64,000 nucleotides of DNA from Pocillopora damicornis (Eukaryota), in the NCBI RefSeq assembly GCF_003704095.1, contig NW_020845022.1:1-64000 (forward strand), written 5' to 3'. This document shows, piece by piece, positions 37,764-38,132 of the stretch. The first letter of the stretch is position 1. Each line of letters starts with the position of its first letter. The position numbers were made by a program, and so were the translations under genes. The notes beneath the pieces were generated by a model that was not told the DNA's origin, did not search any database, and worked only from the letters and a program-made list of their open reading frames with translations.

Positions 37764-38132
37764 TTATCTGCAGCGGTCGAGCCGTTTCAACTGTTTACTC
37801 CGACAGGGAGAGGTATTCAACCTCCGAACGGCTTCTTTTATCAAATTTCCCTGCTCGATGAGCTCAACCAGTAAATTGTAGGACGAAGAGGAAGCCGCAG
37901 ACTTCCTCAATGGATCTGCCGTAGGACATATGCAGGCTCGCAGGGTTATTTCTGAATCGTCCACCGAAGGACGCTCACAGTCTAACATATCACCATATCT
38001 CATTTCTTCCGCATCGATTTTCTGGTTGACTTGAAGCAGGTCTCGAAAATCTGAAATCACCGACTCCATTCCATCGTTTTCTCCTTTTTTCACCCATAGA
38101 CTTCCGTGGTAGTAGTTTTTCGTTGAAGGCAT
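37764..38132 (-). CDS. FRAT/GBP-like GSK3-binding protein, intronless, 122 aa
   Basis: First ATG is at 38132 (MPSTK...). LLVELIEQGNLIKEAVRRL matches the FRAT1 GSK3-binding helix LLQQLVLSGNLIKEAVRRL. MESVISDFRDLLQV resembles the FRAT N-terminal VDRLVAQIGETLQL. Confidence 0.82.
   Translation of the reverse strand: MPSTKNYYHGSLWVKKGENDGMESVISDFRDLLQVNQKIDAEEMRYGDMLDCERPSVDDSEITLRACICPTADPLRKSAASSSSYNLLVELIEQGNLIKEAVRRLNTSPCRSKQLKRLDRCR

Follow-up and report, generated by a model that had tools for sequence, protein, structure and literature searches.

The vertebrate proteins FRAT1 and FRAT2, together with the GBPs of Xenopus and fish, represent the GSK-3_bind family of Pfam (PF05350). In Xenopus, GBP and Axin are mutually exclusive on GSK3, and GBP leaves the catalytic site of the kinase unblocked (PMC2169372). 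Sequestration of GSK3 by FRAT raises beta-catenin/TCF signaling (PMC6974163). The FRAT1 peptide FRATtide, as seen in the structure 1GNG, consists of two short helices whose key contacts are P199, L203, V207, L212, and R219 (PMC9049898). Here, we describe a small gene with the hallmarks of this family in the stony coral Pocillopora damicornis, located in a stretch of 64,000 nucleotides (contig NW_020845022.1, positions 1 to 64,000), which we refer to as the window. We propose, with a probability of roughly 80%, that the gene is the orthologue, in Pocillopora, of an ancient FRAT/GBP family of animals and that a helix-turn-helix in its product would occupy the Axin groove of GSK3.

The coding sequence lies on the minus strand at positions 37764..38132, with its ATG at 38132 and its stop codon at 37764-37766, and it encodes 122 amino acids beginning MPSTK. 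Residues 87-105 read LLVELIEQGNLIKEAVRRL, and within them the segment GNLIKEAVRRL (residues 95-105, positions 37818-37850) is identical at 11 of 11 positions to residues 210-220 of FRAT1, as seen in HMMER alignments to the FRATtide chains 1gng_X, 3zrk_X, and 4afj_X and the full-length FRAT1 chain 5oy4_X of the Protein Data Bank (PDB). By our own estimate, the chance expectation for an exact match of this length in the six-frame translation of 64 kb is approximately 1e-9. The coding sequence contains no intron, because RNA contigs are collinear with the genome over its entire length. AlphaFold predicts a mostly disordered protein with helices at residues 20-36, 81-94, 97-107, and 115-118, and the predicted local confidence (pLDDT) is 82-96 over residues 81-110. 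Thus, the first-pass annotation, which had described an intronless 122-aa reading frame with an MP start, an exact FRAT1 peptide, and an N-terminal helix like domain I of FRAT, described the gene correctly, though without giving its strand, the last of these features as a predicted helix.

Two parts of the predicted structure have counterparts in FRAT/GBP. The first is the putative GSK3-binding helix-turn-helix at residues 81-107 (37812..37892, minus strand), which is delimited by the PDB and Pfam matches and by predicted helices and contacts. Its two helices, with a turn at G95-N96 between them, correspond to the pair of short helices that FRATtide forms in 1GNG, and the coral equivalents of the five key contacts are S84, L88, I92, L97, and R104, so that four of the five are kept. 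Among 23 cnidarian sequences, L88, L97, and R104 never change, and position 92 holds only I or L. The second is an amphipathic helix at residues 20-36 (38025..38075, minus strand), the counterpart of block I of FRAT/GBP on the basis of the predicted structure, invariant residues, and profile alignment; D28, F29, R30, L33, and V35 do not vary in the same 23 sequences.

Several profile comparisons link the coral protein to the family as a whole. The single protein, compared with the Pfam GSK-3_bind model as the first-pass annotation had suggested, stays below the cut-off, scoring 18.3 bits (E = 0.0017, profile positions 199-221 only) against a gathering score of 25 bits, which is an operational and not a biological criterion. 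Other cnidarian members score 16.7-19.6 bits or have no match, and a search of NCBIfam with the coral protein returned no match. The FRATtide chains of the PDB are matched at E = 0.009 by the single sequence, at 2e-4 by a profile of 23 cnidarian sequences (A1), and at 7e-7 by a broadened profile (A2), which also matches full-length FRAT1 at 5e-6. The broadening consisted of adding P0037, P0038, and P0040, small non-coral proteins matched by the cnidarian profile at E = 1.8e-5, 2.2e-4, and 9.3e-4; one of them, P0037, exceeds the Pfam cut-off at 29.3 bits. In all, the cnidarian-only profile gave 12 matches at E ≤ 1e-3 against 1.84 billion representatives. A similar profile (A3) retrieved 105 proteins in a word search, including named fish and arthropod GBPs at E values of 1e-8 to 1e-13, and reached a fish "glycogen synthase kinase binding protein" at approximately 5e-9 in a database of 5.8 billion sequences. 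Some of the arthropod proteins carry automatic names such as "GSK-3-binding protein-like" (Hyalella azteca, Trinorchestia, Hirondellea, and Frankliniella) and others are uncharacterized (Folsomia, Orchesella, Planococcus, and the millipede Chamberlinius). Additionally, a feature search of the ESM Atlas placed chordate (0.92) and arthropod (0.91) GSK-3_bind families as the nearest clusters.

Two candidate relatives, P0036 and the tetratricopeptide repeat protein P0039, were set aside as repeat-inflated and probably spurious. P0036, which the cnidarian profile matches at E = 6e-7, has 280 aa and four tandem repeats of about 64 aa that start MPLTVTDPK and resemble the cnidarian N-terminal block (MP..., W, D.D.VIS.FR); it may be a repeat-inflated chance match or a true relative of the N-terminal domain.

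The comparison of whole profiles extends the similarity beyond the binding peptide. Against a cnidarian-free profile of 30 GBPs from arthropods and fish (A5), A1 gave an hhalign probability of 97.7% and an E value of 1.4e-12 over 118 collinear columns, running from the MPS or MPC start to past the binding helix. The coral MPS aligns with the bilaterian MPC/MPS start, and the helix at residues 20-36 aligns with a bilaterian block. When the alignment is split, E is 2.8e-16 for the C-terminal GSK3-binding block. The N-terminal 42 residues by themselves reach P = 7e-4, a second similarity that is weak, yet independent and collinear. HMMER likewise puts the coral N-terminal block on residues 37-61 of FRAT1, a collinear placement that is not significant alone. 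The profile alignment and the reach of A3 to named fish GBPs support the FRAT/GBP-like identity that had been proposed from the peptide. From these comparisons we conclude that the coral protein and FRAT/GBP share common descent, because 11 identical residues together with a matching N-terminus would be unlikely to arise by convergence.

The gene is real, expressed, and present in a single copy, the only one in the 234-Mb genome (4393 contigs). A word search of protein databases found 33 homologues with 39-98% identity, including a protein of Porites lobata; the closest is an unnamed protein of Pocillopora meandrina that is 98% identical, which bears out the cnidarian source that the first-pass annotation had surmised. 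The genera named among the cnidarian members are the stony corals Pocillopora and Porites only, and most full-length stony-coral members are 120-126 aa long. Alignment of 23 of these homologues (A1) revealed four invariant blocks: D-F-R-D...L...V (residues 28-35), C-P-T-A-D-P (69-74), S-Y..L..L...G.LIKEAVRRL (84-105), and R.KQLKRL (111-118). The two helical ones are common to all homologues aligned. Comparison with the orthologue in another coral (locus L096) gives dN = 0.126, dS = 2.1, and dN/dS = 0.059, a ratio that is approximate because synonymous sites are saturated. The protein is clearly under purifying selection.

It had been suggested that so small a gene could be missed by annotation pipelines. 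This is not so, since the exact protein is on record in both NCBI and UniRef, without a name; what was missed is its identity, not the gene. The cnidarian members are deposited as "unnamed protein product" or "uncharacterized protein", Pfam does not recognize them, and none of the 33 homologues has a functional name or Pfam domain on record.

Transcription of the locus is equally evident. The FRAT-like stretch is contained in 12 RNA runs from six studies, and contigs from four poly(A) or total-RNA runs, each of a different study, were compared with positions 35200-41100. Single contigs cover the gene at 36922-39376 (X1), 36830-39349 (X5), and 37081-38212 (X14), without gaps in the coding sequence, and in the fourth run (X6) two abutting contigs span it at 36803-37659 and 37670-38422. 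Word depth over the gene is 105-164 in three runs and 5-12 in the fourth; the flanks (36382-36775 and 39534-39927) reach 0-5, so the stretch is transcribed and the signal is not DNA carry-over. The first-pass annotation had made its proposal depend on conservation and expression, and both are found, as homologues in other corals and as RNA contigs from four studies. The shortest contig defines a 3' untranslated region (UTR) of 37081..37763 and a minimal 5' UTR of 38133..38212 (minus strand). Minus-strand AATAAA signals occur at 37169-37174 and 37098-37103, the latter 17 nt short of the X14 contig end. No upstream ATG is present between 38212 and the start codon, which has an A at -3. A 142-aa ATG reading frame at 37283-37711 (minus strand) falls wholly within the 3' UTR and is probably non-coding.

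We then asked what the partner looks like in the same animal. In the coral, GSK3 is encoded by at least seven short exons on another contig (G000:C2698, approximately 1291840-1297238, minus strand); loci L009, L011, and L012 carry coral GSK3. The exon that forms the docking channel (L009:675-869, minus strand) is identical to human GSK3 at 61 of 65 positions. The groove residues L266, V267, I269, I270, and F291-I296 are unchanged, and the differences fall at human positions 260, 282, 287, and 298. As read from this exon, the docking groove of coral GSK3 is intact.

A metagenome scan yielded no coral GSK3 cDNA. The complex was therefore modeled with residues 70-122 of the coral protein and residues 30-390 of a full-length metazoan GSK3 from a marine metatranscriptome contig (L016:281-1555), which is 76.9% identical to the coral GSK3 exons overall and 92% identical in the docking exon. 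All three runs scored 0.88, the best of three controls scored 0.02, contacts agreed by at least 70% between runs, and the partner pLDDT was 64-65. In a microbial calibration, the pass mark for this score is reached by 51 of 78 solved complexes as against 2 of 108 mismatched pairs; the figures quoted for eukaryotes are 39 of 65 solved pairs that resemble no complex among older structures, as against 2 of 126 unrelated pairs. In human numbering, the predicted interface on GSK3 comprises Y216, I228-G230, D260-D264, L266, V267, I270, K271, T275, P276, Y288-P294, and I296; on the coral side it comprises S84, Y85, L87, L88, L91, I92, G95-V102, R104, and L105, with S108. The predicted interface is thus the known FRATtide/Axin channel. 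The complex prediction proposed in the first-pass annotation therefore came out favorably as to the site, with a heterologous kinase, but the score of 0.88 speaks for likeness more than for binding and may reflect memory, because the FRATtide-GSK3 complex has already been solved. Binding of GSK3 by the coral protein is, in this sense, supported in silico.

Taken as a whole, the gene would encode a mostly disordered product with two functional helical elements. The helix-turn-helix at residues 81-107 would dock in the hydrophobic channel of the GSK3 C-lobe (helix 262-273 and loop 285-299, human numbering), the same channel that is used by Axin, and its occupancy would keep GSK3 out of the Axin destruction complex. 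Beta-catenin would then be phosphorylated less and stabilized. By analogy with the mutual exclusion of GBP and Axin in Xenopus, we infer GSK3 binding, competition with Axin, and an effect on beta-catenin for the coral protein. The N-terminal helix would probably connect the protein to upstream partners or to transport, and it corresponds to a conserved block within the FRAT1 region for which contact with Dishevelled has been reported. FRAT1 is reported to bind Dvl (Li et al. 1999, as cited in PMC2169372), and for Xenopus GBP, work cited in PMC6974163 describes transport and binding to kinesin light chain. A role in oral-aboral axis formation is speculative.

Two further invariant blocks lie outside these elements. 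CPTADPLR (residues 69-76, 37905..37928, minus strand), of which C69, P70, T71, A72, D73, and P74 are invariant in the cnidarian sequences, is without a clear bilaterian counterpart. The basic block R-x-K-Q-L-K-R-L (residues 111-118, 37779..37802, minus strand) has R111, K113, Q114, L115, K116, R117, and L118 invariant; a short helix is predicted at 115-118, and the block falls outside the confident predicted GSK3 interface.

Upstream of the gene, a divergent neighbor begins. On the plus strand, positions 40197..40838 hold the first coding exon of an SNRK (SNF-related kinase) orthologue, with its ATG at 40241, identified by a PDB match, RNA contigs, and a splice joint; the assignment rests on chain 5yks_A (E = 1e-99, vs 1e-59 for MARK, the next kinase family). 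The reading frame spans 40241-40951 (plus strand). The joint 38778 -> 40197 (GT..AG, plus strand) places the end of the SNRK 5' exon at 38778, only 646 nt from the FRAT-like start codon, and the region between the genes is probably a bidirectional promoter on this account. It contains the upstream CCAAT boxes that had been noted earlier, two of them on the strand of the FRAT-like gene within 38305..38362 (38305-38309 and 38358-38362), and each sits within a repeated TTTGATTGGCTG. The same head-to-head pairing occurs in another coral (L096, a 2.5-Mb contig), where the kinase exon lies 6 kb upstream, and on the contig (L093) of the distant relative P0034, where the FRAT-like protein is 47% and the kinase 78% identical to those of the window. 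The retention of the divergent pair in both suggests a shared bidirectional CCAAT promoter. Synteny with bilaterians was dropped as a line of support: in the one arthropod neighborhood inspected, that of the Hyalella GSK-3-binding gene, SNRK is absent within 10 kb and the neighbor is LAMTOR.

Other features of the window stand apart from these genes or touch them only at the edges. A 429-aa serine-rich, low-complexity reading frame at 47382-48671 (plus strand) may be a long C-terminal exon of SNRK. A run of N at about 43700-44100 is an assembly gap or a masked stretch. At 35200-35593, word depth is in the thousands in each of the four RNA runs, hundreds of contigs fit only in part, and loose ends are numerous; this is a highly repeated transcribed element, probably a transposon fragment. 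In two runs, an RNA joint at 35555-36287 skips 731 nt with CT..AC ends (GT..AG on the minus strand), which indicates that a minus-strand transcript is spliced immediately beyond the FRAT-like 3' end.

Several observations weigh against our proposal. The single protein remains under the Pfam gathering score, and the strong match is limited to about 25 residues. P199 of FRATtide is replaced by Ser. Furthermore, R87, S89, P90, Y91, and P94 of a central R-x-S-P-Y-x-I-P block are invariant in the 30 bilaterian sequences of A5, and in the alignment of A1 with A5 the R-x-S-P-Y block is unrecognizable in the cnidarian sequences; the place aligned to it reads R-S-P-V in some cnidarians and R-P-S-V in the coral protein. 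We treat this missing block as a difference of the cnidarian branch. The complex was modeled with the GSK3 of another metazoan and not with the coral's own, and its score may owe something to the solved complex. The RNA contigs reveal neither the transcribed strand nor the true RNA ends. Finally, FRAT is dispensable for Wnt signaling in mice (PMC6974163), and therefore a strong Wnt role cannot be assumed.

This last point leads to an alternative that we regard as possible: a FRAT/GBP homologue that does bind GSK3 and whose main job in the coral is not Wnt/beta-catenin activation, being instead the localization of GSK3 (nuclear export or microtubule transport) or its buffering in metabolism or stress. 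Besides the mouse result, part of the oncogenic activity of FRAT is independent of GSK3 (PMC6974163), and the kinesin light chain binding and transport of GBP in Xenopus, cited in the same source, would fit a function in localization. The invariant CPTADP and KQLKRL blocks, specific to cnidarians, point to partners not shared with bilaterians; the promoter region is shared with an AMPK-related kinase, SNRK, in this coral, a second coral, and a distant relative; and the transcript is present in adult-colony poly(A) libraries of several studies. However, a protein in the Axin groove necessarily competes with Axin wherever both are present, and GBP is required for the Xenopus axis (PMC2169372).

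We give little weight to the idea of a convergent mimic, that is, an unrelated disordered protein with an independently evolved helix for the GSK3 groove. The confinement of strong similarity to about 25 residues, the Pfam score below the cut-off, and the absent SPY block would all be expected of a mimic, and the groove tolerates differing sequences: Axin occupies it through a helix of unrelated sequence. Yet that very tolerance makes identity at 11 of 11 residues unexpected under convergence. Moreover, three collinear features recur in the GBPs of arthropods and fish (the MPS/MPC start, the N-terminal helix with P = 7e-4, and the binding helix), which are also similar in size and in their largely disordered architecture, and the bridging sequence P0037, found by the cnidarian profile, passes Pfam. 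A chance reading frame or non-coding transcript issuing from a bidirectional SNRK promoter, which the shortness of the frame, the strandless contigs, and the extension of contigs into the neighbor's first intron in two runs might suggest, can be dismissed in view of a dN/dS of 0.059 at saturated synonymous sites, at least 33 homologues with invariant blocks, the exact 11-mer, and AATAAA signals on the strand of the frame near the contig ends.

If the gene is the FRAT/GBP orthologue that we propose, it bears on the origin of the family. A 2020 paper from a FRAT laboratory states that FRAT is not present in invertebrates (PMC6974163). The first-pass annotation had likewise spoken of a vertebrate component, which stands as a description of the literature but not of the databases, as these hold hundreds of arthropod proteins automatically named as GSK-3-binding, including ESM Atlas GSK-3_bind clusters of 154 and 427 mostly arthropod members. 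A "GSK-3-binding protein" transcript is also listed for a sea cucumber (PMC10740944). The family is therefore not restricted to vertebrates, and because its arthropod members were already named in databases, what is added here is a phylum, the Cnidaria, in which FRAT/GBP was not recognized; the literature we searched contained no description of a cnidarian FRAT/GBP. The homology of the coral gene supports the earlier suggestion of an origin before the cnidarian-bilaterian split, and we consider it highly probable that FRAT/GBP is ancestral in this sense.

A cnidarian orthologue together with the arthropod members would thus move the origin of this GSK3 modulator before the cnidarian-bilaterian split and recast its absence from flies and nematodes (Drosophila and C. 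elegans) as loss. The coral protein would also be a minimal natural version of FRAT, with 122 aa, two helices, and two unexplained invariant blocks, and it could help to sort which parts of FRAT matter. It makes testable how GSK3 is locally silenced in the beta-catenin-dependent axis formation of cnidarians. Tentatively, and with more doubt than confidence, we suggest that FRAT/GBP in cnidarian eggs is the missing step that leads from Dishevelled at the animal pole to the local inhibition of GSK3 by which the oral pole is set, in the way that GBP acts dorsally in Xenopus. If true, the switch would be linked to an energy-sensing kinase through the conserved SNRK pairing and its single bidirectional promoter. 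The gain is nonetheless moderate, since neither the family nor its mechanism is new and FRAT is non-essential in mice.

Among the proteins that could be compared with the coral gene product, two lie outside its family. The small protein GSKIP attaches to GSK3 by a helix similar to the GSK3-interaction domain (GID) of Axin, and it has a folded domain of a different family; it showed no sequence similarity and did not turn up in any search with the coral protein or its profiles, none of which was aimed at it. The Axin GID resembles the predicted coral element in being a single amphipathic helix in the same channel of the GSK3 C-lobe, where its binding is mutually exclusive with that of GBP/FRAT (PMC2169372). 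It differs in coming from an unrelated family with an unrelated sequence, in belonging to a large scaffold, and in acting the other way, since it promotes beta-catenin phosphorylation.

The arthropod GSK-3-binding proteins, compared here in Hyalella azteca, Trinorchestia, Frankliniella, Folsomia, Planococcus, and Chamberlinius and known by automatic names only, share with the coral protein a three-part layout, the MPS start, and a Tyr that precedes the first of the binding helices (P-Y-E-x-L-Q-E-L). They are similar in size, at 135-180 aa. Unlike the cnidarian proteins, they retain the SPY block, carry an acidic Y-D-S-D-E-E tail, and pass Pfam.

Mammalian FRATs are intronless, and the coding sequence of the coral gene is intronless as well. 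The coral protein is shorter than its vertebrate counterparts, at 122 aa vs 161-173 aa for named fish GBPs and 279 aa for the FRAT1 chain in the PDB. It is without a recognizable R-x-S-P-Y-x-I-P block, Ser stands in place of P199 and an invariant Tyr in place of H200, and the invariant CPTADP and R-x-KQLKRL blocks are the cnidarians' own. Like FRAT1, FRAT2, and the GBPs of Xenopus and fish, it starts with MP followed by an amphipathic helix, is largely disordered, and is predicted to use the same docking site on GSK3, with 11 consecutive identical residues and with L203, V207 (as I), L212, and R219 kept.

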